A stretch of 64,000 bases of DNA from Chlorokybus atmophyticus (lineage: Eukaryota; Plantae; Mesostigma and Chlorokybus algae), in NCBI GenBank assembly GCA_009103225.1, contig RHPI01000277.1, positions 82,652-146,651 on the forward strand, read 5' to 3'. A program made the position numbers and the translations under genes. Position 1 is the first letter of the stretch, and every line of letters begins with the position of its first letter. Positions 2,401-50,906 of the stretch are shown here, piece after piece. The notes beneath the pieces are model-generated. The model was not told where the DNA came from, searched no databases, and worked only from the letters and a program-made list of their open reading frames with translations.

Positions 2401-5400
2401 CAGTTCGCCACTCACTGCACTGAGAGTGGCGATCTTTCATCTTGGCAACTAGCAGCTGGCTTTTGCCTCACTCTATTGCGCTCACAGCTTGAGACGCAGC
2501 GCTGTTTATGTTTGGAGGTGGTCGAAGGCGGCGGTGGGCAGGGCCACGAGATGGGTGAGGAGCAGCTTAAGATAGTGCTGAGCAGCATGGATAGCCAGCA
2601 TGGGTAGCCAGCTGCATGTTGCTGCTGAGACTTTGTACAACTGTTGGGTCGAGCGGTGCTTTAAGGGCTGTCTGGCAGTTCGGCAGTGAGTCTGCTCCCA
2701 TTCCCTGCGCACAATACAGCACGCCTTGGCAAGCTGCCATGCTCGCTGTGTGTTGGCCAACACACAACGGGCATGGCTTGCGCTTGATTGACGTGGTGTG
2801 AGATGTGAGATATGAGCATGTGATAGTCAGCAGCGCTGTGACTGTGCCGTGTACCTATGTAGTGGTCACTCGGGGGAAACGGGGGGGAGGTGGTNTGGGG
2901 TAAGGTCACCGAGTCAGGTCACCTTGCTGCACTGCCGCACAACCGGCAGCCCACACTGTGTGACACACAGTTGCAACATTCTGAAGGCAGAGTCTACTGT
3001 TTTCCGCTTCCACAGGTACACAGTATTCATGGTGAGGCTGAGCCTAGAGGCCGCGCGCCGCTGCGGCAGCCATATGACCAACCAGCGGATGAAGTGAGCT
3101 TTGCAAAACTGTCGTTGCTTGACAGTGGCTAGCGCAGCGATTACCACTTGAGTGGTGGTATGTGTAGCTGTATTTATAGAGGGCAGCTTTGAAAGCAGCA
3201 AAATGTAGCTCGACGGCAGCTGACTGTAGCACTACTGTGTTGTGTGTGCTAAGGCGTCCAACAAAGCTTCAGTTCTGAGGTGTCCGACGGCAGGCAACTT
3301 GTTGAACTTTGAAAGCTGAAGACTGTGGCTCAGCGGCAGCTAACTGTAGCGCACACCACTGTGGTAGGTGCTGCTGAGGTGGCATACAACACAGCTGTTT
3401 GAAGGTGTGCGACCGCGCTTGCCCAGGGTATGCATTTGGGATTAGCCACTGGTTGCGTGTGGTGGATATACGCAGTGCTTGAGCTCACCAAGCCGGATGA
3501 GTGTTCTTGTTGACAGGTTCTGCATTGCACCTCCAGCTTGCAGTGTCCAACATGGTTGCACGTTTGTTAAATTTCTGTGCAGATGACAGTTGACGCAGGC
3601 TTCAGGCCTTGTGTAGCTTTGTTGTTGATGCTTACATTGGCTAACATCATACAAAACAAATGCTTACGCGCTGTCAACAATGGTGGACACCAAACCTGGT
3701 AGCGCTCTGAAGTTTTGGTGAATCATTCGAGGCCCCTCTTGCACTTCACTCGAATAACAAAACCTTCTGCGACTGGATGGCGCAGACAGAGCGTTTAGGA
3801 AGGCCATTACAGACCATGCGAGGTGACAAGCTGTAGCACATGCATGAGCACAGAAAGCAACACTGCTCATGCTGCATGGTGCTTGCTGATTTGAGTCGCC
3901 TCACACACAGGGAGTCACTGCCGGCTGCTGCTTCCTTCCCCCCGTCCTTCGCATCCGCAGCAGGTCCTCCCACCAGCTTCATGGGAAGCGCTCAAAGTTG
4001 CTTGGCACGGAGGAGTCGATGGGAGGCTGTTCAGCGTTACAACTGTGCGACACTACTGTGGGAACTTTTGAAGATTATATCGCCTGGACCACTTTCCAGG
4101 TGTGCAGGCACTACTACTAGAGGTAGAACTGCTCGTAGTAGCAGTGCACGTTTAACACGCGCACAGACGCACGCACGCACGCACGCACGCGTAATCTCTG
4201 CACCCTCTCCATGTCCGCACACAGTCATAACCCCCCTCCCCCCCCCCTCGCGACAGAAGGGGGGGGGGGNNNNNNNNNNNNNNNNNNNNNNNNNNNNNNN
4301 NNNNNNNNNNNNNNNNNNNNNNNNNNNNNNNNNNNNNNNNNNNNNNNNNNNNNNNNNNNNNNNNNNNNNNNNNNNNNNNNNNNNNNNNNNNNNNNNNNNN
4401 NNNNNNNNNNNNNNNNNNNNNNNNNNNNNNNNNNNNNNNNNNNNNNNNNNNNNNNNNNNNNNNNNNNNNNNNNNNNNNNNNNNNNNNNNNNNNNNGGGGG
4501 GGGGGGTGGGGGGGGGGGGAGATTCTTGTGTGCAAGCGCAGTTTGCACTGCGCTCCTCGCACTTGTGTGGAGCTCAAGTGCGGGGAACGCATTGCACGCC
4601 CTCGGTCCATAGTAATGTAGTAATGCTAGTAGTTGTAGCAGTGGTAGCAGTAGTACTAGTACCCGTACTATTGCTAATAGTGGCGGTACTAGTACTGCCG
4701 CTGCTATAGCTAGTGCTACTAATGATGGACAGCACTCTCGTAATATAAAGCAGTGCTATAGCTGGTAGTACAGCACCCTGTAAGCTTGTGGCTTTGTTCT
4801 CATTGTCGCATTATTTCGTGCAACATCATTGCAGGGGCAACGTCTTTTTCTCTCTCACATGCAACAGGAGGCCCAGCCAACTGCACGGCATGCCGGCACG
4901 GCTTCATCATCCCAAGGTGAAAGATCATGATGACTGAGCAGGCTGCGAGGCGCGTGACATTGCTATGGCCGCCATGACAATGTACAAAAGCTGAATGCAA
5001 CTGTTCCAACATCAGTTACGAGAGAGAGCCGCCTCGCGCAAAGTACGATGAGCACTAGCAGGTTCTGCAAGTGCTGACACTGCTTGTGTCCAGAGTGGCC
5101 GTAGACTTTTGTTGCTCATGCCGGCTCACTTCAGCGTGCGCCAAGAGCACACATGGAATGCGAAGGCATGATCCCAGCCAATACCGCTTTGGCGGTAGCT
5201 GCTTACGCAAAGCCCCTCTAGCCCGTGCACTGCGATGATCGCGTGTTTTCGGTTAAACACAGCTGCGAGGTCTCCACCTGCCAACACCTGCATGACAACA
5301 TGCAGCAACGCGGCGCTGCGTCTATAGTCAGCCCAACCAACAAGGTATGTACTATCTGCCCGAGCCGGACAGGGGTCTCAGCCGTTGATGATTTGCCTTG

Positions 5401-7762: not shown

Positions 7763-8605
7763 CCGTATTTACCCGGTCAGAGCCCCCCCCCCCCCCCCCN
7801 NNNNNNNNNNNNNNNNNNNNNNNNNNNNNNNNNNNNNNGGGGGGGGGGGGGTATTCTATTAAAAGGGGGGGCTTATATTAAATGCAGGGGCCTGTATTCG
7901 GCCGCGGTATTTGGTACAGACAGTACAGTCCACCCTTTTTAAGAGCATACTGTTTATCCTCCGCTATCTTATGCTCTTGGCGAGGTAATTCTATTGACAT
8001 TTCGGGGCATATTATGCTCTTGGGGATCAAAAGCATATTTATGCTATAAGCGCGGTTTCATCAAATCTATCATGCCCATTGCATCACGCCTATCACGTCA
8101 TGCACATCGCGCCATCACGTTCGTCACGCTGATTGCGCGTCACACCTTGCCCATTATGTCAAATTTATCACGCGCATCACGCCTTATGCCACCCCGTCAC
8201 GCGCTGCTCCAACCTTCGAATATCGCTCATTAATACTTGCGAGAATTACATAGAACAAATCTTCGCGGTTAAGCATATTCTCTTAGGCACAAATACTTGC
8301 ATGTATTCCGTTTGGTAATCTCATTTTCTATGCTGTTAGCGAGGTTATTCTCTCGGAGCGAAGTCTCTTAGCGGGGGTAGACTATACCATATGACGGCCG
8401 CCGTACGGTGTTTTAACAGACTTTACGGCGTTTTAGCCTGTTTTATGATGTTTTGGCCGTTTGGAGAGGCCCAGGGCTAGGCGGGTAGGGGGCAAAGGGG
8501 GGTTGTCTACGAAAAGGGGGGGCTGTGCATGTAAACATAGACCCCCTTCAAAAAACCTTTGGGGGTAACCTTAATAAAGAGGAGCTTCAAATCGGATAAA
8601 AACGG
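7763..8605. mobile_element. Non-autonomous Tc1/mariner-pogo-type element (MITE) in the spacer of copy 1
   Basis: TA at 7761-7762 and 8606-8607; termini CCGTATTTACCCG and CGGATAAAAACGG (11/13 inverted match); no transposase ORF; not seen in other spacers. Confidence 0.75.
7926..8384. mobile_element. Second TA-flanked MITE nested inside the first
   Basis: TA at 7924-7925 and 8385-8386; left end CAGTCCACCCTTTTTAAGAG vs reverse complement of right end TAGTCTACCCCCGCTAAGAG (imperfect ~20-bp TIR); internal (A/G)TCACG repeats at ~8085-8205. Confidence 0.65.
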
Positions 8606-8864: not shown

Positions 8865-11238
8865 CTACCGGCAAAGGTTGGTCGCTTCCAACTTGTTGCT
8901 ATTTTTACGGTACCCCTACAGACTCCCCAAACGGAAAGATACGTCATCTCGCGAGTTTGCGCCTGTGAGTGTGGTGCTGCGGGAGTCAGGCTTGTCGCTG
9001 GCTTGCGTCTGTGGGCCTTGTTGGTGGACGCAAGCAAAGGCGGTCAAAGGCGGCTGGCGAAGGTGGTAGTGCGCATGCTGCAAGTTGGGTGAGCAAGCAG
9101 CTTCAGCTCGTGGACAGGTGGGAGGCGCTGCTTGTGCCAACTGGTCTGCTCCGTCTCAGCTCTGCATGGCTCACGTAGCCTTCTCTTGAAATGGCTGGTG
9201 GTTGTTACAACCCACGGTTGTTTGCATGCTTGTGGCTGACATTCTGACTAATGTTGCCGTGAGTGCATGGGGGGAGCTGTGTGCGACTTTGCCGCCGTCC
9301 TCTCGCGGTTTTCAGCAATACGCCTTAGTACCTGCTAGCATGCTGTATTTCGGCATGCCCTTGACAGCAAGGTCGCAGCACACTAGGCATTTTGTGCCTG
9401 TGTCCAATCCAATGAGAGTGCACTCTTTGAAAAGCGCATTTACTGGTGTTCAATCCACTCCGCTATAAGCTACGCTTACTGCGCCTACCTTGCGTAGCAG
9501 CTGTGCACTGCAACGCAAGGTACTGTACTGCTACCGTTGCAGTGTGCATTGCGGCCATCAAGCTGTCTCGAATATCAATGTGCGTGTGGTGTCGTGCCGT
9601 GCAGTTAACAATTGCGTGCACCACCTGCTCAGGTCAGCAATGACGGGCGCTGCGCCACATCACGCAGCTCTAGGCAGGAGGGGAAAGTGTGTGCCACACT
9701 GTGGGTGAAAGTGTGCATTCGGTGTTCAGTTATGCACAGACGCTAGTTGTACAAAGTGCATGCGTAGGCGCGTCTGGCTGGGTGCTTGCGCGCGCGTGTC
9801 TGTCATTCGGAGGAAAGTCACCTTATCGCACTGGTGCGGCAAAGGAGGTAGCCCACACGTTTGCAACATTGGTAATGATGAAATCAGGTGCAGAACCATC
9901 AGCGCGGACTGACTGTGCTCCACAGGTGCATCGTATATGGGTGGACTATCTGTAGGAGCCGTGCACACGCACATGACCAGCCGGCAGGAGATCAGAGTAA
10001 GTGCTGCTCTCCTCGCTTGACGGTAGCTGCGAGCACTAACGAGGCCGCTATCGCGCAGCAGCGGTGCTATAAGTACCTGACATTGCAGGTGGCAGCTACG
10101 AACGCTTGCAATTATTGTTCTGTAACCAAGCTGGTAGCTCAATAGCAGCTCACTGAAGCAGCACTGCACTGTGTGCTTGCTACAAACACCATGTGTTCAT
10201 GTGTTCATGTGTTTGACGTGTTTGACAACTGTGTCATTGACACTGATGTCTGCAGCACAACAGTGGAAACTGCTGCTGCTATCATACCACACAGCTGTTG
10301 GAAGGTGTGCGATTGAGCTTGCCCCACGGTAGGCACTTGACATCAGCTACTGGTTGCCTCTGGTGAGTAGGAACTGTGCTTGGGCTTGCAAAGCCTCATG
10401 ACTGTTCTGCACTGCAGATGATCTCAACAGCTTGCATTGTCCGTCGCGTGCTCAGTGCAGGTGCCCGCAGGTGACTGTTTGCGCAGGCTTGACGCCTTGT
10501 GTCGCCTTGTTGTTAATGCTTATGCCGTTGGCTAACTATGAACACAACCACTGCTTACTTATTGATCAGGATGGCAGACACCGTACAGGGTAGCTTCGGA
10601 CGTGTACACGGTAAACTTCAGGAGGCCCCTGTCGCTTGCAATTGGCCCAGCTCATTGCCTCTGCAACCGATAAACGGCGCATGTAGAATATTGGGAAAGG
10701 CCAATACGCACCACACGAGGTAGCAAGCTGCTATGTGTTGCATTTGCACAGAACGCAACACATTGCTATAGTACTACTGATTTGGTACTTGGTGCTACAG
10801 TTTGTAAGCTACCAATACCCATACCAGCAATGTTGCAGTAATGGTGCTTGCTGAGTTTAATCGCATTACGTACGCAATGAGAGTCACATTGCAAGCTGCT
10901 ACATCCTTTCTGCAACAAATCCTCTCACAAGCTTCTTGTGCCTGCTACTACTCGTCGCTTGGCATGGAGGATTTGCTGGAGTCTGTTCAGCATCACAATT
11001 GGGCGACACCGTCTCTGGAACGCTCAAAGACAACCTCGCCTTGGCCACCTCGCAGGTGTGCAGGTACTACTACTAGAGTGCGTACACTTATTCTCTCCAC
11101 GCCTCTATGTCCGCACACAGTTATACCCACCCTCCCACCCACCCACCCACCCGCATAGACTGTATGTCGGGCACGCACGCACGTACGGTAGTAAATACAT
11201 GAGAGAGAGCGAGAGAGAGAGCGCGAGAGAGCGCGCGA

Positions 11239-11297
<59 letters not shown>

Positions 11298-13810
11298 NNN
11301 NNNNNNNNNNNNNNNNNNNNNNNNNNNNNNNNNNNNNNNNNNNNNNNNNNNNNNNNNNNNNNNNNNNNNNNNNNNNNNNNNNNNNNNNNNNNNNNNNNNN
11401 NNNNNNNNNNNNNNNNNNNNNNNNNNNNNNNNNNNNNNNNNNNNNNNNNNNNNNNNNNNNNNNNNNNNNNNNNNNNNNNNNNNNNNNNNNNNNNNNNNNN
11501 NNNNNNNNNNNNNNNNNNNNNNNNNNNNNNNNNNNNNNNNNNNNNNNNNNNNNNNNNNNNNNNNNNNNNNNNNNNNNNNNNNNNNNNNNNNNNNNNNNNN
11601 NNNNNNNNNNNNNNNNNNNNNNNNNNNNNNNNNNNNNNNNNNNNNNNNNNNNNNNNNNNNNNNNNNNNNNNNNNNNNNNNNNNNNNNNNNNNNNNNNNNN
11701 NNNNNNNNNNNNNNNNNNNNNNNNNNNNNNNNNNNNNNNNNNNNNNNNNNNNNNNNNNNNNNNNNNNNNNNNNNNNNNNNNNNNNNNNNNNNNNNNNNNN
11801 NNNNNNNNNNNNNNNNNNNNNNNNNNNNNNNNNNNNNNNNNNNNNNNNNNNNNNNNNNNNNNNNNNNNNNNNNNNNNNNNNNNNNNNNNNNNNNNNNNNN
11901 NNNNNNNNNNNNNNNNNNNNNNNNNNTCCCGTCTCTGTCTCACCGCTTGGTGTAGAGCTCTCGCGCAAGTCGGGGGCTGCGCAATGCGAGCCCGGTGGCC
12001 CGTAGTGCTAGTGTTACTTCTACAACTACAACCACTAGTGGTATACCTGCTACGTAGCAGGAGTATCATTCAACGAATGATTGTTAGTAGTGTACATCAA
12101 ATGCAGGACATGCATGCGCATGCATAACGTGTAGTTCAGTCAGCAATGTACTACCAGTGATGGACAGGACTGGAAGTAGTAAAATCCGTACTGCGACTAG
12201 TAGTTAAGCCTGTACTACTAGTCGTAGGCTGATCATCCTCAGAGTGCTGTACTACTAACAGCAGGCTGCAAGGGGCTTCCATCATTCTCCTCATGAACCT
12301 AGTCATATGCAACATCAACGTGCAGGGCAAGGATCTCTCTCGCTCTCTTACATGCAGGCAGGAAGCGCGGCCGACTGTAACACAGCATTGCCGCTACGCC
12401 TCCTCGTCATGATGATCCCAGAATGGAGTGCGACTGAGCTGCTGCGAGGCTCGCGATGATGACCTCATTATGGCCATGTTATCCATACTTGTATGGCAAC
12501 ATGCCGCAAGCCGTCGACCTGTGGCTTTTGATGATTAGACTGGAAGCTTGACGCTGGTTTGATGCATGTGCACGCGTGTGTCTGCAGTGACAGCCCAACC
12601 AACAAGGATGTACTAACTGTAGAAAGGGGGCAGAGGTCTTAGTCGTTCGACAACTAAGATCTGTTGATGGTTCTGCTTTGCGGACATTGCGACTACGTGG
12701 GCTACCTGCTCTGTTGCACCTTACCGCTGCTTTTCAACACACACGCACGCACACATGCATGGCACGCGTGCGCATGGGCTACCCTGTGTGTCTGAGGCAT
12801 AGGGGGGGGCACGGTGTCTGGCATGCACACGCACTCGTAGCCCAGAGGGCGTCAGGCTCGCACACTGCAGAGACACTGCATGGCGCAGCACTGCCGCACC
12901 ATCGCTCACCTGCCAGGCAGTGCGAGGTGAGGTTGTTCTGAGTCTGGCAAAAGGCAAGGTAATTTCGGGTGCAATCCCAAGACTCTTATGCACAGCACTG
13001 TACATGAAAGTTGCTGCATACCGCCCGCCCCCCCCNNNNNNNNNNNNNNNNNNNNNNNNNNNNNNNNNNNNNNNNNNNNNNNNNNNNNNNNNNNNNNNNN
13101 NNNNNNNNNNNNNNNNNNNNNNNNNNNNNNNNNNNNNNNNNNNNNNNNNNNNNNNNNNNNNNNNNNNNNNNNNNNNNNNNNNNNNNNNNNNNNNNNNNNN
13201 NNNNNNNNNNNNNNNNNNNNNNNNNNNNNNNNNNNNNNNNNNNNNNNNNNNNNNNNNNNNNNNNNNNNNNNNNNNNNNNNNNNNNGGTGGTGTGTGCCCC
13301 CCCCCCTTCCTCCCAAGCGCGCGCGCGCGTTCACACACGAACGCATGCAAAAGTACACTGGCTGTTCAACGGCTGACACAATGGTGTGCTGCGGCACTAG
13401 TGGTGATTGTTGGTGGCAGAGAGTGGAGAGCGCTGGGCTTTCAAAAGACAAAGCCATGACTGGAGCGTAGTCTTCGCATCTGGCAATTACAATAAAAGCC
13501 GTGCCCAAGTGGGTGCGGTCGTGTTGTGTTTAAGTGAAGCACATGAAAGCAGCGGACAAGTCCAAGTGTAGTCTAAGTGAGGTTGCCAGCAGCTACAACA
13601 TGGGAGGAGCGAGGGGGCGTGCGTGCATGGTTGTGTTTGTGAGCGTGTGCGTGCAGGTGTGTAGACTCTACACTTAGTGACTGATGTAGCTGTAACAGGC
13701 GTGCGTGTGCATGGGTGGGTGCACGCGCGCATGCTGTGTTTGGGGGAGGGGGNGCTCATGCGCTTCAATGTGCGTGTATGTATATATATATAGGCCTTCA
13801 CCTTACAGCG
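8865..13810 (+). pseudogene. Array copy 2 (decayed LRR-like gene)
   Basis: Landmarks at 9086, 10700, 11051, 12275; fragments such as QLQLVDRWEALLVPTGLLRLS; no intact ORF. Confidence 0.55.
11200..11297. repeat. (GA)n microsatellite running into a gap
   Basis: Direct observation. Confidence 0.95.
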
Positions 13811-16182
13811 GCACCTTGATCACGTGATGGCTATGAAAGCCATTGCAAGCACAATATATGCCAATCGTTGTATGTGAACTATTGAGAGCTCATTTAAGGT
13901 CATCATGATGCATCGCTTGACACGTTGCAAGCAATCCTAAACATCATTCATTTGTGTATTGCGAGTTTTAAATTCAAATCACATGTAAACCTTGGAATGT
14001 TATTAGGTAATGAGATATATTAACAATTATATAATGGTTGACCGTGAACAATGTAAGTCTTTAGCATATTGCATAAGCAAGGTTAGGTGCAACCAGAAGC
14101 TTGCAATGGCAACATGAATACGTAAAGAGTAATGTTATACGAACAAACAATATAAAAATATAATATAAATATAAAAATTTCCTTGGTTGTTATATGGATG
14201 ATTCTTGAGCTAGTACAATTTAAAGCATAGCGCTTACAACATATCATAAACATATGAAGTTCAACTAAAAAACTTGTTTGTAAAATCGTTGAATGTGTAA
14301 ACCAGCGACAGCTTTGATGCAATTTAACATACCATGCATCAAGTGGCGTGTATTCCATGTAATAAATTGCATAATAAGTAATTAAATCGCAAATGTGAAT
14401 TATGTGTTAATGTTCAATCTATTGAAAGTAACGATATGTAGTTGTAACCCCCATTGTAAAGCACTGTTTACAACGGTAGCGTATTTACAAGTGTCATCGT
14501 TTACAACGTTTGACTTGCTCATAATTCATGTGCAACATGTACATGCTTGTTTTCAATATTGTGTGACAAAAGAGTTTTTCATCCTCTTCTTAAAATTACT
14601 AATACGGTAACGTGACCTGATCATAGTAAGCTTGATCGCAACACAATCAAGCCAATAATTGTCGGTAATACGACCAGTATAATTAAAAGTTGCAATTATG
14701 CATTGCAACCATATTGATTCGTCAAGGGGAATGAGATTAGTAACTTGCAACATGGGATTTATGCCTTGCTTTTGCATGCCAACCACACGATCGAAACGGA
14801 TCTGTCCCTGATTAGTGTCAGCCTACACTTTTCAGCTTGCAAAGGCTGTGCTATTAGCGCGGTTTGAAAAACCGCGCCTACAGCGCTATCATCAGGTCGT
14901 TATTGCTTCGCAATTACCGAGGTGACTTAGGGCAGGTCGCTGCCAACTTTTTGCCATCAACGGGACAACACGGAGTATGCGTACATAAGCCCAAATTCGC
15001 AAGGCTTGCATTGCCGCAGTTTGCGCAAGGCCAGTGTGAGTGTGGCGCTGTGTGAGTCAGGCTTGTCGCTGGCTTGCGAGGCGACTGGAAACGGTGCCGG
15101 CGGTTTGCGTGCCACAAGATGGGTGAGGAGCAGCTTCAGCTCATGGGCACACCAGACTGGAGGTGCTGCTTCAGTTGGTGTCAGTTGGTCTGGTCCGTCT
15201 TTGTCTTAGAGTGCAGTCAAACAGCCTTGCGTGCATGCTTCTGACTAAGACTCTGACTACTACTGTTGCCGTGAGCGGTTTCTTGTGGGCTCTGGTGGCC
15301 GCTCAACTGTGCGACTTTGCCTCCGTCATCTGCGTATACCAGCAGCACGCCTTCGTGTCCGCTGACATGCTGCCTTTTTTTGCTCTTGACACCATGGTCG
15401 CAGCAGCACACGAGACAGCTTGTGCAAGTGTCTAGTCCAATATGTGTAAAGAAAAACGGAATTCTGCATAGCTTAGCGGTTTTAATCCATTCATTGAGTA
15501 TCGGTGAGCTACGCTTACTGCAGCTGTGAACTGCAGCTTGGCAAGTCAGAAACTATTACAGTGTACTGCTACCGTTGCAGTGTGCATCGCGGCCATCAAG
15601 CTGTTTTGCATGTGCGTGAGGCGAGGAGTGCTGAGCACGATTGCGTGCACCTACTCAGGTCAGCGAGGTCCGGTGCTGCGCCACGTCACGCAGTGTGGGG
15701 AGCGAGTGCACAGTGTGCGCTCAGTGATCAGTTACGCACAGACGCATGTGTTGTGCATATGCGTGCGAGTCTGGCTGGGTGTTTGCGCATGTGTGTGGGG
15801 ACTATACGATGCGGTGAGGTCGTCTTGTTGCATGCCGCCTGGTGCGGCTAACCAGGTACTTAGCCCGCACAGTTGTAGCATTGACAGCTGGGTGGCAGAA
15901 TCATCAGCATATATTGATATTTTCCGCTGCCACAGGTATTGTAAGTACATGGTTGGGCTGAGTTCAGAAGCCGTATGCGCGTAAGCATTTTACCAACCGC
16001 CGGGAAAGGGACTGGAGTGCAAGCGATGCTGATAGCAACTGTAAGCGGTGATGCGGTCGTTGTCGCTGAGTGGTGCTGGGTGGCCGCAACTACAGTTGAG
16101 CTAGTAGCTCGACGGCAGCAATGCATTTTGTGCTGGCGATACCAATTGTATATTCTGCAAATGGTGTTATTGGCAAGCCTAG

Positions 16183-16221
16183 TAACAGTCTTACTAGCGT
16201 TGAACGCTAGTAAGACTGTTA
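16183..16221. repeat. Perfect inverted repeat, 19-bp arms, 1-nt spacer; overlaps an 8-bp direct repeat TAGTAACA (16180-16187 and 16227-16234)
   Basis: taacagtcttactagcgtt-g-aacgctagtaagactgtta; other copies read straight through without this insert. Confidence 0.95.
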
Positions 16222-16308: not shown

Positions 16309-16359
16309 TTGATGTCAGCTGATAGTAGCACAATTTGTGCTACTATCAGCTGACATCAA
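16309..16359. repeat. Perfect inverted repeat, 25-bp arms, 1-nt spacer
   Basis: ttgatgtcagctgatagtagcacaa-t-ttgtgctactatcagctgacatcaa; private to copy 3. Confidence 0.95.
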
Positions 16360-17885
16360 GCTGCCGTTAAATTATGGCAAGTGCTGCTCCGATAGCATAC
16401 AACACAGCTGTTTGAAGGTGTGTGACCGAGCTTGCCCCATCCTACGCACATGATTTGACCACTGGTTGCCTTTCGTGGGTGTAAATTGTGTTTACGCTCG
16501 CAAAGACGCATGATGGTTCTGGTTGGCAGGTTCTGCATTGTAACTGCAACACCTTGTCTGTTGCAGGTGTACAGGTGCACTGCAGGCAAGTGCTTACGCA
16601 GGCTTGAAGCCCTCTGCAGCATTGCTAATGCTTCACCGTTACCAACCACTGGTAGCACTGAACGCAACAACTGCTTACTTCAGAAAGTAACGAATGGCAG
16701 ACACCGTACTAGTTGGCTTGCTGATGGGTTGTTGGTGACCTTCTTGACCCCCTGCCACTCGTATTGTGCGCAAAGAGAGTCAGAGTTCAGGTTGCTTCAT
16801 GCTTGCGTCAGCCTTCACATCTGCAGCAAGTCCTCCCACAAGCTTTATGCGAATCGTTGTACTCGCCTGGCAATGAGGAATGGCTGGGCGTCTGTTCAGC
16901 GTTATGGTTTGGCAACACCATTGCGGGAACGCTTGATGACCAGCTCACCTGGGCCACGTCGCAGGTGTGCAGGTACTACTGCTAGGAGTAGAGCCGTGAA
17001 GTGCTAGCAGTGTACTTCCAACGCGCACATAGTCTCTCCACCCCCTTCCATGTCCGCACAGAGTCATCTCCGCCTTCCCCCCTCCCCGAAATACACACAT
17101 TGCACGCACGCATGCACGCACTGGCATACACATTGCATACATGTGCACGCGTGCACACATAAGACAGATTTTGAGAAAGAGAGGAGAGGGGGAGGGGGAG
17201 GGGNNNNNNNNNNNNNNNNNNNNNNNNNNNNNNNNNNNNNNNNNNNNNNNNNNNNNNNNNNNNNNNNNNNNNNNNNNNNNNNNNNNNNNNNNNNNNNNNN
17301 NNNNNNNNNNNNNNNNNNNNNNNNNNNNNNNNNNNNNNNNNNNNNNNNNNNNNNNNNNNNNNNNNNNNNNNNNNNNNNNNNNNNNNNNNNNNNNNNNNNN
17401 NNNNNNNNNNNNNNNNNNNNNNNNNNNNNNNNNNNNNNNNNNNNNNNNNNNNNNNNNNNNNNNNNNNNNNNNNNNNNNNNNNNNNNNNNNNNNNNNNNNN
17501 NNNNNNNNNNNNNNNNNNNNNNNNNNNNNNNNNNNNNNNNNNNNNNNNNNNNNNNNNNNNNNNNNNNNNNNNNNNNNNNNNNNNNNNNNNNNNNNNNNNN
17601 NNNNNNNNNNNNNNNNNNNNNNNNNNNNNNNNNNNNNNNNNNNNNNNNNNNNNNNNNNNNNNNNNNNNNNNNNNNNNNNNNNNNNNNNNNNNNNNNNNNN
17701 NNNNNNNNNNNNNNNNNNNNNNNNNNNNNNNNNNNNNNNNNNNNNNNNNNNNNGGGGGAATGACTCTTGTGTGCGAGCGCAGTTCGCACTGTGTTCCCCG
17801 CATTCGTTTGGAGTTCTTGCGCACGTACGGGGAACGCACTGCGCATTGCACGCCCGGTGGTTCAGTACTACCAGTCCGGTACTAC

Positions 17886-21100: not shown

Positions 21101-23220
21101 ACACAAAATGTAATGACATGCCCAATTGCAATATGCGAACAAGTGCACGAGTTTTTTTCCTGTAGGATTTCACATTTATTTCACTTAGGATAGTAACATG
21201 TGTTAATGTATTGAAATGCATTAATACTGCTACTTGAACTCCATGTGTTATAATTGCATGGCATAAACATAAATACTCCATGACTCTTTATTAAGTAATA
21301 TGCACACATAATTATCATTTGCGCTTGTCGCACTACAAGAGTTAAATTGGGACCACAATATACATTTTGCATGCAAAGCTTATGTCTATGACGCAACTCT
21401 GAGGTAGAAGCTAGCATACATACACGTACATTTGCTGCACAGAAGAACTACCAGAGACGGTGCTCGAACCGTGCATGCTGAGAGAATCAATACGCATCAT
21501 GCAGCACGATTGCCGGTAGGGGCAGGTCGCCCCAATTGTCACCATTAATACCCCTGCAATAGCGTCCCCACAAGGGAATACAAGGTCTGTTATACGACTT
21601 TAGTGACAAGCTGCTACCGATATACAAGCCCTAAATTGAAAGCTTGCGCTGCGGCACATTGCGCCAAGCCGTTTAGTGTGGCGTTGTGTGTGTCAGGCGT
21701 CTGTGAGCCGCAGCTTCAGTGGCGGTGTGCATGCCGCAGGGTGAGCGAGGAGCAGCTTCAGCTCGTGGATACGTTGGAGGCGCTGCTTGTGTCGTCTGGT
21801 CTAATCGGTCTCAGAGTGCGTGGTTTGCGCAGGAGAAGGCTGCTTGTTGCTTGCATGCCTGGGTGCATGCTGGTGAGACTTTGACCGAGCTGACGCTTGC
21901 CGTGAGCAATTATCTGAGGTTGTGTGGCCGCTAGGCTGTGTGCGACTTTGCCTCCGTTCTGCGCAGTCAAGCAGCACGCCTTGGTGTCTGCTGGCATGCT
22001 GCAAAATTTGGCAAGCCCTTGACAGCAGGGTCGCAGCAGCACACGAGGCAGCTTGCATGATCAGACACAAGCTGCGCAGCCTGTGTCTGAGTATGTGAGT
22101 GGATTGATGAAAATCGCAATCAGCGGCTTGCATCAACTCACCCAATCAAAACTGCTAAGCTACGCTTACTGCAGCTGTGCATTGCAGCGCCAGGTACTGC
22201 TACCGTCGCAGTAGGGCATTGCGACCATTAAGCTGTCTCGCATGTGCGAAAGGCACCGTGCCGCGATGAGGAGTGCTGAACACAATTGCGTGCGCCACCT
22301 ACTCAGGTCAACGATGAGGGCCGCTGCGCCACACCAGCTTCAGGCAGGAGGGAGTGTGTGCCACGTGCACACTGTGGGAAGTGAGTGTACAGTGTGCACC
22401 CGGGGCCCGATGACGCACAAAGACGCGTGTTGTGCGACTTTATCACAGTACTTGATGCCACCCACCCAGGCTGCTGCGTCAGCATAGGCAGCTCACACTA
22501 TGCACCATCGCTTCCTGAAATGCAAAACTTCAGCGCAGACCGAGTGTTCTCTGCCACAGGTCAATGTGGTTAATCTGATGTCAGAAGCCGTGTCCACACG
22601 CACATGATCAACGGGCAGGGGATGAGAGTGCTGCAAGCTATCCTCATTTAGTAGGAGCTGGCAGTTACAAACGCTGCCATCTGTACGATAGTTTGGTTGG
22701 TAGCTCAATGGGTGACTGCAGCAGCGCTGCGTTGTGTGCTGGCTACAAACATCCTGTTTATAAAAAAGTGTGTTACTGAAAGGTTCACAGCTGCTGAGAC
22801 GTTTCCGACTGCAGGTGGCACCTTTGGAAGCTACACTGTCTGAAACTGCACATGTGGCTCAACGAGCAGCTCAACTGACCACAACTTGTTGCACTGTGGT
22901 AAGTGCTGATGAGGTAGCATATAGCACGTCTGGTTGCAGGTGTGCGACCCAAGCCTTCTCCAAGGTTCACACTTATGAGTCAATCGTTGCCTATGGTGGC
23001 TGTTTATTGTGCTTGGGCATGCAAAGACTCATGCTTGTTTTGCAATGCAACTTCAACAGCTTGCATTGTTTGTTGCGTACAGGTGCGTGCAGGTGTTTGC
23101 GCAGGCTTGAAGTGTTGTGTAGGTTTGTTGCCATTGCTTACATCGTTGGATAGCGCTGAACAACTCGTTGAACTGCTTACTCTGCGACTGACGGATGGCG
23201 CCTACAGACGTGTGCACATA

Positions 23221-23266
23221 TGGTGCGTATTGGCCCTTTTCACGTGAAAAGGGCCAATACGCACCA
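23221..23266. repeat. Perfect 46-bp palindrome (23-bp arms, no spacer) at a deletion junction
   Basis: tggtgcgtattggcccttttcac|gtgaaaagggccaatacgcacca; most of the right arm is the normal unit sequence (aaggccaatacgcacca), and the left arm replaces ~100 bp present in other copies. Confidence 0.97.
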
Positions 23267-24019
23267 CGTAAGGCCCTGAGGCGACAAGCTGCTGCACGTT
23301 GCATTTGCATAGAACGCAACACGCGGCCATAGAACTGCTGTGGAACTTGGTGCCTGGGTCAGTGTCTGCTACCCATATTATCAACGCTGCATGGTGCTTG
23401 CTGACTCCGTTGGACTTGAGCGCATGGTCAGTAACGAGCGTTACGATGCAGGCTGCTACTAACTTGCCGCTGTCCTTGGTATCTGCAGCACGTACTTCCA
23501 CGAATATCGCAGAAAAGCACTGGTCGCTTGGAGGAGTTGGGTGTGTTCAACGCTATGATTGGGCGACACCATTGCGGGAACGCTCAAGGACCAGCTCACC
23601 TTGGTCACCTCGCAGGTGTGCAGATACTGATACAAGGAGTCAATTTGGGAGAAGTGCTCGTAGTAGCAGTGCATTTTCCACGCAGGCACACACGCGTGCA
23701 CACATAGTCTCTCCACCCCTCCACGTCCGCACACAGTCATTGAGAGCGCCTGCATGAACGTTGCACCATCACCATGATGAAAAAGCTAAAATGCCCTGCA
23801 GGATGCCGTTCTACTACTAGTGCTGTCCATTGCTAGTCGTATTAGCGATACTACTAGTACTACTACTACTACTGCTACTAGTACTTTGAGAGTTCGAATG
23901 CTAGTAGCACTACGACGGGCCATGCATACTACGGGCCGCCGGGCGTGCCGTGTGCTCCTCACTTGCGCAAGAGCTCCGCACATGTGGCAGGAAGCGCAGT
24001 GCCAACTGCGATGGCACAC

Positions 24020-24296
<277 letters not shown>

Positions 24297-27200
24297 NAAC
24301 ACCAGGTACGAAAGCTGCAGCGCGGATAGTAAGAAGAGCACTAGCAGGTTTGTGTATGAGCATGACACTGCTTATGATAGGATAAAGTGCGCTACAGCTT
24401 GAGACTTTAGGTCTTCTGTAGCATGCGCTTAGAGCACACCTACCATGCGGAAATATCAATAACGGCCGAGACGTGTCCCTCTTTTCAGCAATAATACACT
24501 GCACGTGTGACATTTACAGCAAATCCTTGTTGGTTAGGCCGCGTGCAGACGCATGCGTGCGCACGCACCAATCCAATAGATGGACTGAGACGTCCGCAGG
24601 GCGAATGTTCATAAACAGCTTATCAGCTCTCATTTCAGAAGGCTACCAGTCTGGTGATTGGAGGCCTTTCAAGCAGCCGCTGTTGCCGCAATAATATGCA
24701 TGTTGCAATACATGTGTTGGCAGGTGGACACCTTGCAGTTGATTGACCAACCGTAACCAGCACGGCAGTGTAACGCAAGCAAGAAAGGCTCAGCGTAAGT
24801 CACCATTATGATGAACGCATTGCAACCATCTGTCAGTTTCATTGGCAGGAGAGATGCGACTGCGGGGGCTACATATTCTGCCGCACCCTACTTCTGCTTC
24901 TGACTTGCTCGCACGCACGCAAGCTGTCTGCGTTTAACGGCATATGTATCTGGGTGAGTCCGTGGTTTCTGGCACATGCACTGGTACTTGCACTTTACAA
25001 GGACACTGCATAAGGTGCAGCACAGTCGCACCAGCGCTCACCGTCAAAGTGAGGTAGCCCCAGAACACGTGCACAGCACAGAACTGTACAGCATCCCTGC
25101 TGCACCACGCACGCACAATAAGACACTGGTCAGCAAGTGACGCCTTGCATGCGTGCGCGCCCGCGCTGTTGTTATGGCTGTCTGTGTGCACCGGGGAGGG
25201 GAGGGGTAACATGTGGGCATGCGTGTCCTTAAGTTTGTTCGCATGCAGGTATGTACAAAGACGTGGGCGTGTTTGTGCACGTGGGCATGGGTGTAAGTTT
25301 TTGACCGTGGGTCGGTGCGTGGTTATGTGGTTAGAGCGATGCGAGCGTGTATGTCTAGGCGCAAAAGGGGGGAAGAGTGGTGCGTGAGCATGCATGCGTG
25401 TGTGTGTGGCAGGGCCCCAGGGGGGGTATGCGTGCATGCGTCGCCGTGAGCGTGTGCTTACCCGCGTGCGTGCAGGTGTGTAGAAGGCTTGTGCAGGTGC
25501 GTGGGCGTGGGCCCCATGCCACATGCATGGGTGGTACGGTGCCGCTCATGCACCCGGGGTAGGTGCGCACACGTCTGGGCGGGTGGTGGTGGTGGAATGC
25601 GTGCATGCGCGTCACGAGCATGTTTGTTTGTGTTCCTAATGCCACATGCAGGTGTGGGTGTGTGCGCTCCGGTGTGTGTGAGGCGCATGCGCGCAGCGGT
25701 GTGCATGTGGGTGTATTGGTCGGTACGGGTTTGGGCGCACGTGTGCGCATTAGTTGGTAAGAGAGTGTCAGTGGGCCTGTGGGTTGGTGTGGTGCGTGTG
25801 GGTAGGTGGTTGTCAGTGCGTGCATTTGTGTATAATTTGGCGGAAAGGGGTGGGTGGGGAGAGGCCTTCGAGGTGCCGCGCAGTGCTGCACGTGGAGGGT
25901 GGCACTCTCCACGTCACGGCTACGGACCACCATGATGACCAGATATAAGTGCAGGTAGGATGTTGTTGTAGCGTGCTGTCTGCATGGAGGGTACCATTCT
26001 CAACCACTCATTTGCCTGTTCCTGATGACACCCATTGGTATGCAGTGGTTGTTGCAGACGCTACATAAGCATAGTATGCAGCAGGTTGAACGGTTCTGAA
26101 GACGAGGGGTGAAGCGGTAACGATGGCAACTTTGGCTTGTGTGGAGTGTGCATTTGCGCCATGTAGTTGGTGGCAAGCACGTGGAGCGTGTTGTAACTGA
26201 CAGTAAGCGATCGGCGCTGTTGAGCTCGTATACATGTGTATATTAACATGATTTGCTTGGTTGAATGACTTGCTGAGCACGATCACATTGCACTCAACTA
26301 GCTCAGCCATTGTTGATGGTTCTGTGTTCAGACGGTGCGACTGTGTTGGCTACAGGTAGCCAGTACAAATAAGCTGCAGGTTACCTGCTGCTTTGCATAC
26401 ACGCGGGCATGCCGTGGGTTGCACGCACCACGCATGCACATGCAAACTGTATATGCTTGATCGCAGCTGGGCATCCATGAGTGCATAACATCCGGCACGC
26501 GCACGCTCACATGCACTTGCACTCACACTTGTATACTACAGGATACGGCATGAGGCGCAGCGCATCCGCACCACCGCTCACCTCCGCCGCGATATAGTCC
26601 TTGATCCTTGTAGATGTGACGTAGTCCCAAAACCCGCACGCATGGCACAGCACTGTACAAAACACTATGATGCATGCAGGAGTACATTGACTGTTTAACG
26701 AGTGACACAGCACAATGGTGTGCCAGTATAGCAGGGCTGGTTGTGGTTTCCGCGGCAGGGAGTAAGGAGCGGTGGTGGGCTCTCTGCTGAAGCAACAACC
26801 GCAACCGCAGTGTAGTGTTTTCCTACCTATTACCGCCACTGAACCACACAACAGTCGTTGCAGAACTGAGTCATGAAAGCATCCAACAAGTGGAAGCAAA
26901 ATCCAAGTGCAGTTGCAAGCAGACACAACCCAACCGCACAGGATGATGCTGAAGCCTCCTAACACCGTCGGCCACGAACATAAAGTGCATTCGGCGGCAT
27001 GCCAACCAATACAGCTTGCCTTAGCCGGCAGCACTACATTTCCCGGGGGGGGGGGGGGGGGGGGNNNNNNNNNNNNNNNNNNNNNNNNNNNNNNNNNNNN
27101 NNNNNNNNNNNNNNNNNNNNNNNNNNNNNNNNNNNNNNNNNNNNNNNNNNNNNNNNNNNNNNNNNNNNNNNNNNNNNNNNNNNNNNNNNNNNNNNNNNNN

Positions 27201-28739
27201 NNNNNNNNNNNNNNNNNNNNNNNNNNNNNNNNNNNNNNNNNNNNNNNNNNNNNNNNNNNNNNNNNNNNNNNNNNNNNNNNNNNNNNNNNNNNNNNNNNNN
27301 NNNNNNNNNNNNNNNNNNNNNNNNNNNNNNNNNNNNNNNNNNNNNNNNNNNNNNNNNNNNNNNNNTGCCCGGGGGGGGGGGGGGGGGGGGGGGGGGGCTG
27401 CATTTGTAAGTGTGGGTCATGGTGTTGGTGGATGTGTACAAGAGCTAGCATGCTACATTAGTAGCATGCCTTGTGTCAAGCACACAATGTCATGTACAAC
27501 ATCCAGCAGTCACACATGCCATTGCATGCGTACACATCAGCAATTTACCATTGGGCTGCCAACTGTACCTAACACATAAAGCCCCTACTCCGTTAGTCAC
27601 TTAAACATGCAAAGTGTCCAGCAATCACATGCGCATGCGCCTTATGTGGGAGGGGCGGGGGGCGATGCGTGTGTTGTGAGTATGTGCGCACCCATGCACA
27701 CAAAATGCAGGACACGCACGTGCGGGTGTGTAGAAAGATGTGTTTGTGTGTGGGTAAAAGTTCTCAGAATTAATGTAGCAGTCCTTGATGCATCTATTAC
27801 GAATATACAAAGGCTATTGTTACAGTCGTAACCACTACTGCTTATGCTGCCATAACCATCGCATGTAGTGGGCGTTCCGCAAGCAAAGACGTCATTGACC
27901 TCATTGAGTCGTATGGCGTACTTTATAATGCATGCTGAGTGTGTGTGCATGATAAGCGCACTGTATGCATAGTGTTATGCATGCCATACATGCAACAACT
28001 CACTCACAATGCATAGACAACACATGCAAACAAAGTACGAGAGTCGTCGTTGATTGCGGAAAATAATGTGAAAGACTCCTTCCACTGAGACTCATTCCCA
28101 TATTATAATTACATATATTAAGTGCTATGTTTTGAGCATCATTAGCAATATTGTCAATTCACACGAGGCCAATCTTATATCAAGAATGGGCCAACTACTA
28201 CGTAAATAGACAATACGCATGGGTTTGTGTGAGTACACCTTGCACTTATCAATGCAACATGTTGTTTGTTATCTTGCGATAGTACTTAAAGCTTACATAC
28301 ACCAACGTAAGTTGTAAACATCATTGCTGATTGAACAAAAATGCGACATCTTGTTTTCAATCATCTAAATGTCAGTGCTCCCAATTTAGCACACCGGTTG
28401 CGCATTCAAGAATGACGATGTGAATCCACAAAGAGGAAAAGCGCATATAGTGAAAGCTGTTAAGGCATAATTGAACGAAAGTGTAACCTATACATGTTGA
28501 TAAACCCATTTGAGCATTTACTCACAAGGTGTGTATGTTGGACGCAGAAGTCAATTTTGCTAGCCCATATCACAATGCGCTTGTTCTTACTTATGACATC
28601 AACCGCTCCGTTTCATAGATGTTGGATGTATGCACATAAAAGTCCACGCGAAATCGTTCTTTAGCCTACCCTACACTTTTAGGCTAAAAGTTTAGGCTAC
28701 TGCCTTCATAGTTTTGACCAGATCGTTATTGTGTCATGA

Positions 28740-32880
<4,141 letters not shown>

Positions 32881-34169: not shown

Positions 34170-35160
34170 CAACGGAAACTTGCCGTCACAACTGTCAGCT
34201 ATGCACCCTACAAAGCGTCCCTAAACGTGAATGAGACTGTCAGAAGACTTAATCAACCTTAGCACAGAGTCTTGCGCAGCGGCAATTTGCGCCGTGCGAG
34301 TGTGGTGTTGTGTGTGGGTCGAACTTGTTGCGCCGCAGCGCCTTATTGGCAAGCAAGGGGGTCATATGCGACGGGCCAAGGTGCCGGCGGTGTGCATGCC
34401 ACAAAATGGGTGAGGAGCAGCTTTCAGCTATCATGGACAAGCTGAAGGCGCTGCTTGTGTTGACAGTTTGGTCCGTCTCAGCGTGCATGGTTCACGCAGC
34501 CTTCTCTTGCGATGGGTTTGGTCGCTGGTTGTTTGAGCATGCCTGTGGGCATGCTTCCACAGCTACTACCGTTTAGCGGTGTTGAGTTGGGCCAGCTTGG
34601 CTATGTGCAAGTTTGCCTTCATCGTCCACGCCAGTTGACTGTATGCCTTGGTGTCCGCTGGCATGCTGTGATTTGGCATGCTCTTGAAGGTAGCAGCAGA
34701 TGAGGCAGCTGGTGCCTGTGGGTGATTGAGCAAAGTCAAATCGCATAGATCCGGTAATATACGCTCACCTGCAGCTGTGCAGTGCAATGCGCACTGCAAG
34801 GTACTGCCACCTTGCAGTGTGCATTGCGGTCATCCAGCTGTCTCGCTCTTGGATGTGCGTGGCACAGCGAGGAATGCTGTTGTTGCGTGCATCACCTACT
34901 CGCGGTAGAGATGAGGTGCGTTGTGCTGTGCGCCACATCAGGCGGTGTCAGGCAAGTGAGGTGCGGGGGAAGGGGGAAGTGCGTGGCACACACTGTGTGT
35001 TGAATATGGGTACAGTGACTGTACGGTGTGCACTGCCCAGTTCCGCACACATACCTGTGTTGTGCATGTGCGGCTGGATGGGTGCTTAAACGGACGCATG
35101 TGGGGTTATGCAGTGCAATACCCTCATCTTCGCATGGTGGCAAAGCAGGTCCAGCTCACA
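34170..35160 (+). pseudogene. Truncated array copy 6a (5' ~1 kb only)
   Basis: Contains MGEEQLSAIMDKLKALLVL at 34407, then restarts with the upstream motif (taggagcaagtcgc...gtccccagaagggaatacaaaccctaa) at ~35163. Confidence 0.6.
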
Positions 35161-38100: not shown

Positions 38101-41100
38101 CTTGCCCCATAGTTGGCAATTTCTGCATTGCAACACTGTGCGCATGGTACAGGTGCGTGCAGGTAAGTGTCTACGCAGGCTTGAAGCCTTTGGTAGCCTT
38201 GTCAATGATTACGCTGCTGGCTGGCGCTGAACTCAACAACTGCATAGTGATAGGGGTGGCAGACACCACCACTGGATAGCTTCCTGATGTGGTATCGGTG
38301 CACTTCTTGCGGCCCTGCCACGTGCACTTGTAGTTCGCCCCAAACCCATTGCCTTTGCAACAGATAGTTGGCGCAGACAGAGCGTTCAGCAAGGCCAATA
38401 CGCATCACGTGAGGTGACAAGCTTCTGTGCTTTGCACTTGCAGAAAACCCAGGACACTGCCAATATACTGCTACGTTACTTTGTGCTACAGTGTGCCTGG
38501 CTACCATACAGCAATGCTGTAGCGGTGCTTGTCGACTCGAGTGGCATCATACGCAAAGAGCGTCCACATGCAGGCTGCCAGTTCCTTTTTGCTATCCTTC
38601 GCATCTGCAGTAAGTCCTCCCACCAACTTTATGAGAAGCGCTGCTGGTCACTTGGCATGGAGGAGTCGCTGGGCGTCTGTGGCGCAACGATTCTGTGACA
38701 CCATTGCCGTAATCCTGGAGGACCAGCTCGCCTTGGCCACCTCGCAAGCGTGCAGGTACTACTACTAGCAGTAGATCTGTGAGCAGTGCTAGTAGTCGTA
38801 GCGCTGCAGTTGCCACGCGCGCACGAATGCACGCATAAAGACAGAGAGCTCGAGAGAAAGAGAGAGGATGTGTGTGTGTGTGGGTTTGGTTTGGGCGGGG
38901 GGGGGGGGGGGGGGGGGGANNNNNNNNNNNNNNNNNNNNNNNNNNNNNNNNNNNNNNNNNNNNNNNNNNNNNNNNNNNNNNNNNNNNNNNNNNNNNNNNN
39001 NNNNNNNNNNNNNNNNNNNNNNNNNNNNNNNNNNNNNNNNNNNNNNNNNNNNNNNNNNNNNNNNNNNNNNNNNNNNNNNNNNNNNNNNNNNNNNNNNNNN
39101 NNNNNNNNNNNNNNNNNNNNNNNNNNNNNNNNNNNNNNNNNNNNNNNNNNNNNNNNNNNNNNNNNNNNNNNNNNNNNNNNNNNNNNNNNNNNNNNNNNNN
39201 NNNNNNNNNNNNNNNNNNNNNNNNNNNNNNNNNNNNNNNNNNNNNNNNNNNNNNNNNNNNNNNNNNNNNNNNNNNNNNNNNNNNNNNNNNNNNNNNNNNN
39301 NNNNNNNNNNGGGGGGGGGGGGGGGGGGGGAGAGAAGTTATATGTGTGTAAGCGCAGTTGCACTGCGCTTGCGCTCTCGCACTCATAAAGCTCTTGCGCA
39401 AGTGCGGGGAACACACGGCACGTCCGCTAGCTCGTTGCAGTGCTAGTAGTACTAGAATTACTACTGCTAGGACCAGGACTATCCGTCATAACAGTAGTAC
39501 CGCTACTACCAGTGTTACTACTAGTAGTGATGGACTGTACAAGTAGCAGTATAATTCAGTGGTACGACTAGTAGCACAGCATCTGGTGAGAGGCCTCCAT
39601 CATTCTCATCATGGCATTGTTTTGTGCAACATCCATGCAGGGGTAAAGAGCTTTAAGCTCCGAGAGCGGCGCTCTCACATGCAGACACAAGAGGCCTAGC
39701 CGACTGCAACACGGCATTGCCGCCACGGCTTTGTCATCTCAAGGCGGATGCAAGCGTGCTGCGAGGTACAAACCCTGAGCTCGCCATAGCCATGTTGACG
39801 TACAAAAGACGAATGCAACCGTTCCAAAGACAACATCACGTACAAGAGGCGCAGCTCAGCGTGCGCCAATAGCACACAGTGCGAAGGCAAGAGCAGCTGC
39901 TACAAGGCTGTTGCGTCATCAGACCGCAAGCTGATGGCCGTCCTGCTATCGTTTCGCTCCAACTGCTGGTGCGTGTGCATGCGTGCATCTGGAGTCAGTG
40001 TGATCAACCACGATATACTGTCACTGTAGAAGTGGGACTGAGGTCTCAGCCGTTGTTGTTGGTTCTGCCTTGTGCACGGTGCGACTGTGCAGGCTACCTG
40101 TTCTGCCGCACCGTACCATTGCTTATGACACGCATGCTGCAGTGGGTGGCACGCACGCGCACATGCCAACTGTGTGTCTGGTCGCACCTGGGCATCTGGG
40201 GTGAGTGCACAGCATCTGGTGCATGCGCTTGCACCGCGCACACGCGCAATCTACAGGGATTGCATGGCTCGTCACCACCGCACCACCGCTCGCCTGCACG
40301 GTGAGGTAATCCCAGGATCCGCAGGGAACGGCAATGTACAGGTATTCTTGCCGCACCATGCCCGCACGCATGCAGGAACACACTGGCTGTACCAAATAGA
40401 CGCATCACATTGGGGGATGCGTGCATGTCTGTCGGTGTGGCTGTGTGTGTATGCCAGGGAGGAGCGCGGGGCATGCGCGTGCGCAAGTATGCAGCTGTGT
40501 AGAAAAGCGTGGGCGCGGCCGCGGGGGGGGGGGGNNNNNNNNNNNNNNNNNNNNNNNNNNNNNNNNNNNNNNNNNNNNNNNNNNNNNNNNNNNNNNNNNN
40601 NNNNNNNNNNNNNNNNNNNNNNNNNNNNNNNNNNNNNNNNNNNNNNNNNNNNNNNNNNNNNNNNNNNNNNNNNNNNNNNNNNNNNNNNNNNNNNNNNNNN
40701 NNNNNNNNNNNNNNNNNNNNNNNNNNNNNNNNNNNNNNNNNNNNNNNNNNNNNNNNNNNNNNNNNNNNNNNNNNNNNNNNNNNNNNNNNNNNNNNNNNNN
40801 NNNNNNNNNNNNNNNNNNNNNNNNNNNNNNNNNNNNNNNNNNNNNNNNNNNNNNNNNNNNNNNNNNNNNNNNNNNNNNNNNNNNNNNNNNNNNNNNNNNN
40901 NNNNNNNNNNNNNNNNNNNNNNNNNNNNNNNNNNNNNNNNNNNNNNNNNNNNNNNNNNNNNNNNNNNNNNNNNNNNNNNNNNNNNNNNNNNNNNNNNNNN
41001 NNNNNNNNNNNNNNNNNNNNNNNNNNNNNNNNNNNNNNNNNNNNNNNNNNNNNNNNNNNNNNNNNNNNNNNNNNNNNNNNNNNNNNNNNNNNNNNNNNNN

Positions 41101-41954: not shown

Positions 41955-47810
<5,856 letters not shown>

Positions 47811-50811: not shown

Positions 50812-50906
<95 letters not shown>

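Follow-up and report, generated by a model that had tools for sequence, protein, structure and literature searches.

Our analysis supports the view that the 46-bp perfect palindrome at positions 23221-23266 of this 64,000-nt stretch of Chlorokybus atmophyticus DNA is a mutational scar, in which an inverse copy of a short segment lies beside the segment that was its template, and that the process behind it is a recurrent one (the whole stretch is called the window below; positions refer to it, and strand is given for genes only). The best reading, to which we give roughly an even chance, is that the scar is neutral and was left by short-range template-switch synthesis, in its replication fork version or in its break-induced, multi-jump version. 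The focal palindrome is an ordinary example of a mutation class that has already been described, and it is the frequency of such events in the window that is unusual. Its value is that of a clean, polarised case, where old paralogous copies of the surrounding repeat unit reveal which of the two arms is new.

The repeat array and the focal palindrome

The first ~49 kb of the window consists of an array of about seven old copies of a unit of ~6-7 kb, which are 65-80% identical in patches (divergence 0.25-0.35). Runs of G or C and (GA)n/(TC)n abound in the array, and N gaps break it up. We found no Pfam match for any of 10 ORFs of the unit and no Rfam family matched in it, and codon periodicity between the unit copies is absent, with a top-phase fraction of 0.441 against a null value of 0.441 over 6412 aligned columns. 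Because all three signals are missing, the unit behaves as non-coding DNA, and a coding or RNA function for it was rejected on the same grounds. The last 15 kb of the window contains intron-bearing genes, among them a Ribosomal_L17-family gene on the + strand (E=2.5e-21) and a fragment of an LCAT-family acyltransferase gene on the - strand. The gene models at 53196-54020 and 56003-57857 (Ribosomal_L17 and LCAT, respectively) have introns rich in (CA)n/(TG)n-like runs.

The palindrome, first noticed in an initial annotation of this DNA, is real in the assembly. Its arms, 23221-23243 (TGGTGCGTATTGGCCCTTTTCAC) and 23244-23266 (GTGAAAAGGGCCAATACGCACCA), are 23 nt long each, 100% complementary, and separated by a spacer of 0 nt. 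As a single strand, the region folds into one hairpin with a free energy of -29.1 kcal/mol, compared to -11.0 ± 2.4 kcal/mol in shuffled sequences (z = -7.7). The unit copies provide the polarity. The word GGCCAATACGCACCA of the right arm has exact matches in copy 2 (10699) and copy 7 (44030) and a match with one mismatch in copy 6 (38393), and the whole arm, 23244-23266, aligns with all copies; on this basis it reads as ancestral unit sequence and is the proposed template. The left arm, 23221-23243, would then be the derived one: it is the exact reverse complement of the right arm, is extra in comparison with copies 1, 5, 6 and 7, and has no counterpart in any other unit copy in our alignments. 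The annotation's description of the right arm as ordinary unit sequence and of the left arm as its exact inverse therefore holds, with 23 of 23 nt in the inverse orientation. Insertion of a MITE or of another foreign element was considered and rejected, as the inserted arm is an inverted copy of the adjacent sequence and is found at no other place in the window.

The same annotation placed the left arm in a position that is occupied, in the other copies, by ~100 bp of different sequence. Because the unit contains a direct repeat internally, the left flank of copy 4 can be aligned in two ways. In the MAFFT alignment, and in pairwise comparisons with copies 2 and 6, the flank pairs with the distal repeat, and the left arm falls at a ~100-bp gap. 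Local alignment, on the other hand, matches 23174-23220 best to the proximal segment, which immediately precedes AAGGCCAATAC; this is so for each of the five copies that retain the segment, with scores of 18, 11, 14, 14 and 21 versus 7-13 for the distal one. The 10-mer TCTGCGACTG has exact matches in the window only at 3766, 23181 and 43991, which are the homologous proximal sites (0.19 expected), while GACGTGTGCAC, the word behind the distal alignment, has eight matches in the window when up to one mismatch is allowed. Because the proximal alignment wins and the TCTGCGACTG sites agree with it, we place the loss at 23180-23182 and treat the left arm, together with ~9 nt next to it, as a net insertion, a reconstruction in which the ancestral state is read from paralogous unit copies that are 65-77% identical and that allow a second, weaker alignment. 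Replacement of ~100 bp by the left arm was rejected on this evidence, given also how common GACGTGTGCAC-like words are. What survives of the earlier description is that copy 4 indeed lacks 99 bp; the loss, however, is ~40 bp upstream of the insertion.

By the best alignment, copy 4 would thus have, from left to right, the 99-bp loss, the proximal sequence preserved as far as ...ACAGACGTG, some 32-35 nt of net insertion, and the ancestral right arm. The junction of the loss, at 23180-23182, has CTC microhomology; the equivalent segment of copy 7 is 43894-43992, where the sequence reads CTTACTC...[99 bp]...CCTC|TGCGACTG. The segment 23180-23211 stands directly upstream of the right arm in the other copies. 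The net insertion is the sum of the 23-nt inverse copy and a filler of about 9 nt (GTGCACATA, 23212-23220), which lies between ancestral ACAGACGTG and the left arm and forms, with the preceding TG, the 8-nt mini-palindrome TGTGCACA; a search within 400 bp found no convincing template for it. ACGTG stands on either side of the insertion, and the centre of the palindrome, TTTTCACGTGAAAA, holds CACGTG, the mirror of the ancestral word containing ACGT. The allele that we predict for the ancestor of this locus is ...ACAGACGTGAAAAGGGCC..., and the stem of the ancestral precursor at the site is weak and just 8 nt long (ATGGTGCG/CGCACCAT in copy 7).

A third lesion is found just beyond the right arm, where the 8-nt insertion TAAGGCCC (23269-23276) was probably templated by the lost segment. 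The word TAAGGCCCTG occurs at just two sites in the window, 23269-23278 and 43951-43960 (0.11 matches expected from shuffles); the latter is within the 99 bp of copy 7 that copy 4 has lost, and in copy 4 the word is an extra insert. With three lesions in a span of 100 bp, and lost DNA re-used in one of them, the simplest reading would be one multi-jump episode.

Palindromes in the rest of the window

Chance expectation was estimated from block-wise dinucleotide shuffles (n=100). The window contains five perfect palindromes in which the arms reach 12 nt or more and the spacer does not exceed 4 nt, versus 0.09 expected; in three, the arms are 15 nt or longer, versus 0 in the shuffles, where the longest arm was 14 nt. 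When mismatches are allowed, 12 are observed versus 0.33 expected, a 36-fold excess. The two long perfect palindromes other than the focal one are both in copy 3, at 16183-16221 (19+1+19, 39 bp) and 16309-16359 (25+1+25, 51 bp). Two spacerless palindromes appear to be older, one at 1446-1489 (22+22, one mismatch) and one at 2736-2777 (21+21, two mismatches), and a near-perfect quasi-palindrome with 19-nt arms, one mismatch and a 6-nt loop is found at 34784-34827.

The annotation had counted six long palindromes in the decayed block and none in the 15 kb of intact genes, and had seen in this the mark of a process recorded in dead DNA. The palindromes at 1446, 2736, 16183 and 16309 are confirmed along with the focal one, but at 1642 a 13-nt loop separates the arms of an inverted repeat that is perfect over 16 nt. 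The genic part, for its share, contains two shorter perfect palindromes, each beyond chance singly by comparison with the shuffles: 58602-58627 (12+2+12), in non-coding DNA, and 61301-61330 (13+4+13), in a probable short GT...AG intron. The six strongest palindromes are all in the array, and the chance of finding none of them in the genic part is 0.18. In the scan with enrichment by annotation class, performed on the window and with mismatches allowed, density was 10 in 46.0 kb of array and 2 in 15.0 kb of genic DNA (binomial p=0.74), so that the excess in dead DNA is not significant; nor is confinement to it shown, with two palindromes in non-coding DNA of the genic part. The one at 61301-61330 fills much of its probable intron, which is ~75 nt long (61272-61346) and is flanked by two coding segments (...LVFVVEGTIDVHSADSSLHELQ / ...GNDVYFPR) that look cupin-like by eye.

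Three of these other palindromes can also be polarised by comparing the unit copies. The palindrome at 16183 has a right arm that can be aligned to copies 1, 2 and 7 and is apparently ancestral; the 19-nt left arm appears to have entered between ...CCTAG and GAACGC..., and the flanks have lost nothing visible. The centre of this palindrome coincides exactly with the centre of an imperfect palindrome of ~107 bp that belongs to the unit itself (43313-43419 in copy 7, with 50-nt arms that are 74% complementary and a 7-nt spacer). Both arms of the latter are shared with copy 2 (near 10040-10150) and in part with copy 1 (near 3160-3260), and it is, as far as the copies allow to judge, older than the amplification of the unit.

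At 16309 the orientation is opposite: the left arm is seemingly ancestral (copy 2 has TGATGTCTGC...AGCACAA) and the right arm inserted, again with no visible loss from the flanks, and copy 4 has the mini-palindrome CAAC-TT-GTTG at the equivalent of the centre. The inserted arm is followed by a further 15 nt, GCTGCCGTTAAATTA (16360-16374), which is absent from the other copies and for which no convincing local template was found. Within this region, GCTGCCGTTAA resembles the inverse of the ancestral upstream sequence TCAACGGCAGC seen in copy 5, and the inverse copy may once have been longer, with a 6-nt skip. The first 11 nt of GCTGCCGTTAAATTA match the inverse of the same TCAACGGCAGC at 10 of 11 positions.

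The event at 34784-34827 is of a different kind, in that an inverted repeat conserved in all unit copies (homologues at 9497-9580, 15535-15618, 22194-22248, 29177-29260 and 42747-42830) has received, in one copy, a patch of ~7 nt that turns its left arm into the inverse of the right arm, with one mismatch. The conserved short repeat is CACTGCAAC ... GTTGCAGTG, and the patched copy also has a 5-nt slip in the loop.

Judging from the unit copies, there are at least four polarised events in the window, each of which would have written the inverse of neighbouring sequence at or near a small or an old palindrome. The paralogues thus indicate that small self-complementary seeds and the midpoints of older palindromes are both places where new palindromes arise, and that an inverse copy, a skip and the re-use of a snippet can come together in one episode. 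The three perfect palindromes have 0 mismatches in 134 sites; if they are of similar age, divergence since their formation is less than about 0.02 per site (95% bound). If the process went on and its products then decayed neutrally, a series of 0, 1 and 2 mismatches like that among the arms of 19-25 nt would be expected.

Proposed template switching and its alternatives

The mechanism that we favour can be laid out as a series of steps. In copy 4, a polymerase that had reached the ancestral ...ACAGACGTG would have abandoned its template for the opposite strand and read 23 nt of the latter immediately in front; the product, TGGTGCGTATTGGCCCTTTTCAC, is the reverse complement of the 23 nt that follow. 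The enzyme would then have returned at the self-complementary ACGT, so that the new arm came to abut its template with no spacer. The 99-bp skip at the CTC microhomology, the filler of about 9 nt and the 8-nt copy from the skipped DNA probably belong to the same episode. In the four-point template-switch model, the event would be of the inverted-repeat-creating type, 1-4-3-2, a class that makes up 31% of high-confidence human-chimpanzee template-switch events (PMC5453318). All 23 nt of the copied fragment are the reverse complement of a directly adjacent template, and the flanks, 23180-23211 and 23244 onward, are colinear with the other copies. The length of the fragment exceeds the 14-nt threshold used in that study (PMC5453318), and arms in our shuffles never went beyond 14 nt.

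A switch to the opposite strand is preferred to a fold-back of the nascent strand because self-priming leaves a loop and the centres here are of 0-1 nt, which speaks for inter-strand switching; human-chimpanzee data likewise favour inter-strand switches (PMC5453318). From these centres we infer the inter-strand nature of the switch, which would have occurred at a stalled fork or during break-induced synthesis. The closest known relatives of the event are the four-point template-switch mutations (Loytynoja & Goldman 2017, PMC5453318; Walker et al. 2021, PMC7954356), which also add a nearby reverse complement between unchanged flanks and for which inter-strand switching has been inferred. They differ in that here the copy abuts its template (0-1 nt), that polarity comes from old paralogues and not from outgroup species, that the focal event is accompanied by other jumps, and that the frequency per substitution looks far above that in hominids.

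Quasi-palindrome-templated mutagenesis (Ripley 1982; Dutra & Lovett 2006, cited in PMC5453318) has its likeness in the imperfect repeat at 34784-34827, which was improved, and in the position of 16183 at the centre of an old palindrome; the Ripley-type correction is described in PMC5453318, and the patch at 34784 is an outcome of that type. The focal palindrome, in contrast, is largely de novo and formed around a 4-nt self-complementary seed, and classic quasi-palindrome correction was rejected for this site, where the ancestral unit has just the weak 8-nt stem. Multi-jump rearrangements of the MMBIR/FoSTeS kind (PMC8421209) also involve several microhomology jumps per episode and snippets templated nearby. 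They extend over kilobases to megabases and the focal lesions over about 100 bp, and we infer a single event behind all three of the latter from their clustering.

The initial annotation had seen in the palindromes a signature of end joining. In such a version, a double-strand break near 23212-23244 would have been resected, and its 3' end would have folded back on itself or used the other end as a template, copying ~23 nt in inverse by a polymerase theta-type enzyme or, as in yeast, by Pol delta with NHEJ, before being joined with loss of nearby DNA. Much in copy 4 has this look. The 99-bp loss, the filler of about 9 nt and the 8-nt templated snippet are all within 100 bp, and deletion, microhomology, filler and snippet together are the classic appearance of polymerase-theta or MMBIR-type repair; microhomology is present in the form of CTC at the loss and of ACGTG on both sides of the insertion. 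Fold-back inverted insertions at yeast breaks are 5-34 bp long (PMC11724301), and the inserts of polymerase theta do not usually exceed about 30 nt. Fold-back inversions and snap-back SD-MMEJ (PMC11724301; PMC5728401; PMC2943611), as well as polymerase-theta inserts, thus share with our case the inverse copies of 5-34 nt, the microhomology, the filler and the nearby deletion. Their products, however, keep a loop that is set by the priming microhomology: documented yeast fold-backs retain an asymmetric loop of 41 nt (PMC11724301), and the centres here are of 0, 1 and 1 nt. Furthermore, 16183 and 16309 have no visible flank loss, the loss in copy 4 is ~40 bp upstream of the insertion and not at the same junction, and 34784 is a patch within an intact conserved element. 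We therefore keep from the annotation the notion of a scar left by a recurrent process, while the near-absent centres, the lossless insertions and the 34784 patch fit template switching at least as well, and we regard end joining with snap-back synthesis as unlikely, though well worth weighing.

The remaining explanations fare worse. An improbable one is that the inverse 23-mer is an error of gap filling or polishing. The published assembly was made from short reads only, with SOAPdenovo2 at k=85, GapCloser and Pilon (PMC7027972), all the evidence comes from this one assembly, and the window bears traces of gap closing, N runs by homopolymers and single Ns in GA repeats. On the other hand, the arms, of 19-25 nt, are shorter than the assembly k-mer; the flanks are colinear with the paralogues, so that an error would have had to switch at two exact points no more than 25 nt apart; no N is closer than 1031 bp, with the reservation that closed gaps leave no trace; and chimeric fold-back reads would give arms that reach the read end, when the focal arms end after 23 nt and have unique flanks. 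Nor can artefacts account for palindromes of like size with 1-2 mismatches, or for the ancient shared one. Somewhat less probable still is a break end capped by a hairpin, through a transposase of the hAT/Mutator type or fold-back ligation, then nicked 23 nt from its tip, filled and joined. It does predict a perfect spacerless palindrome abutting the junction, as P-nucleotide additions and hAT footprints do. Known P additions and excision footprints are, however, only a few nucleotides long, and the arms of 19-25 nt are about ten times longer; moreover, neither a target-site duplication nor a transposon remnant was seen in the site alignments, two of the three centres are odd (1 nt), and the 34784 patch is left unexplained. 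We attach hardly any credence to selection for a functional element, be it a protein-binding palindrome with the G-box/E-box core CACGTG or a precursor of a hairpin RNA. The core and the strong fold are there, and template switching is known to create hairpin genes (PMC8794818), but the palindrome is present in one copy only, CACGTG arises automatically from the mirroring of ancestral ACGTG, the unit has neither a coding or RNA-family signal nor codon periodicity, and the other palindromes are of unrelated sequence.

Frequency of events and state of the assembly

In eukaryotes, palindromes become strongly unstable at lengths greater than 40-50 bp, so that the suggestion that this organism tolerates palindromes that are usually unstable was overstated. 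As a rough guide, a perfect palindrome with 22-nt arms stays perfect for ~1/(2×22) = 0.023 substitutions per site, which amounts to about 1000 substitutions over 46 kb, a span with three perfect palindromes whose arms measure 19 nt or more. Between human and chimpanzee, about 794 high-confidence events were recorded per 14.5 million base differences (PMC5453318). The excess over that value would be, roughly, ~50-fold, or ~170-fold if the repeat-creating class alone is counted, an estimate built on three events, a window picked for looking odd, one short-read assembly and differing detection rules. That the alga has a lineage-specific and very high rate of template-switch mutations of this near-loopless, inverse-copy kind is a possibility that we put forward tentatively and with more doubt than belief. 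If true, this would suggest something peculiar in how the alga replicates or repairs its DNA, and a constant supply of new hairpins in its non-coding DNA. Should the frequency hold genome-wide and in the reads, this alga, an early-branching streptophyte, would lend itself naturally to the study of template-switch mutagenesis and of the birth of hairpins.

For the sister species, RNA-seq data but no genomes are available (PMC8611356), and two exact-pattern scans of metagenome contigs gave no match. N gaps in the window are at 4270-4495, 7800-7838, 13036-13285, 17204-17753, 27065-27365, 38920-39310 and 40535-41133, and single Ns at 2895, 13753, 24297, 30676, 44649, 50907 and 63982. Almost all of them are next to G or C homopolymers, in one case with poly-C before the Ns and poly-G after them, or are single Ns inside (GA)n; the pattern looks like the trace of short-read gap closing in low-complexity DNA and is compatible with the published pipeline. 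Of the low-complexity runs at 24023-24296, 30601-30810, 44576-45112 and 50813-50906, one is a 94-nt stretch of C that borders the genic part; (TC)137, (GA)105 and (GA)268 are pure microsatellites of great length that recur in an equivalent position of the unit.
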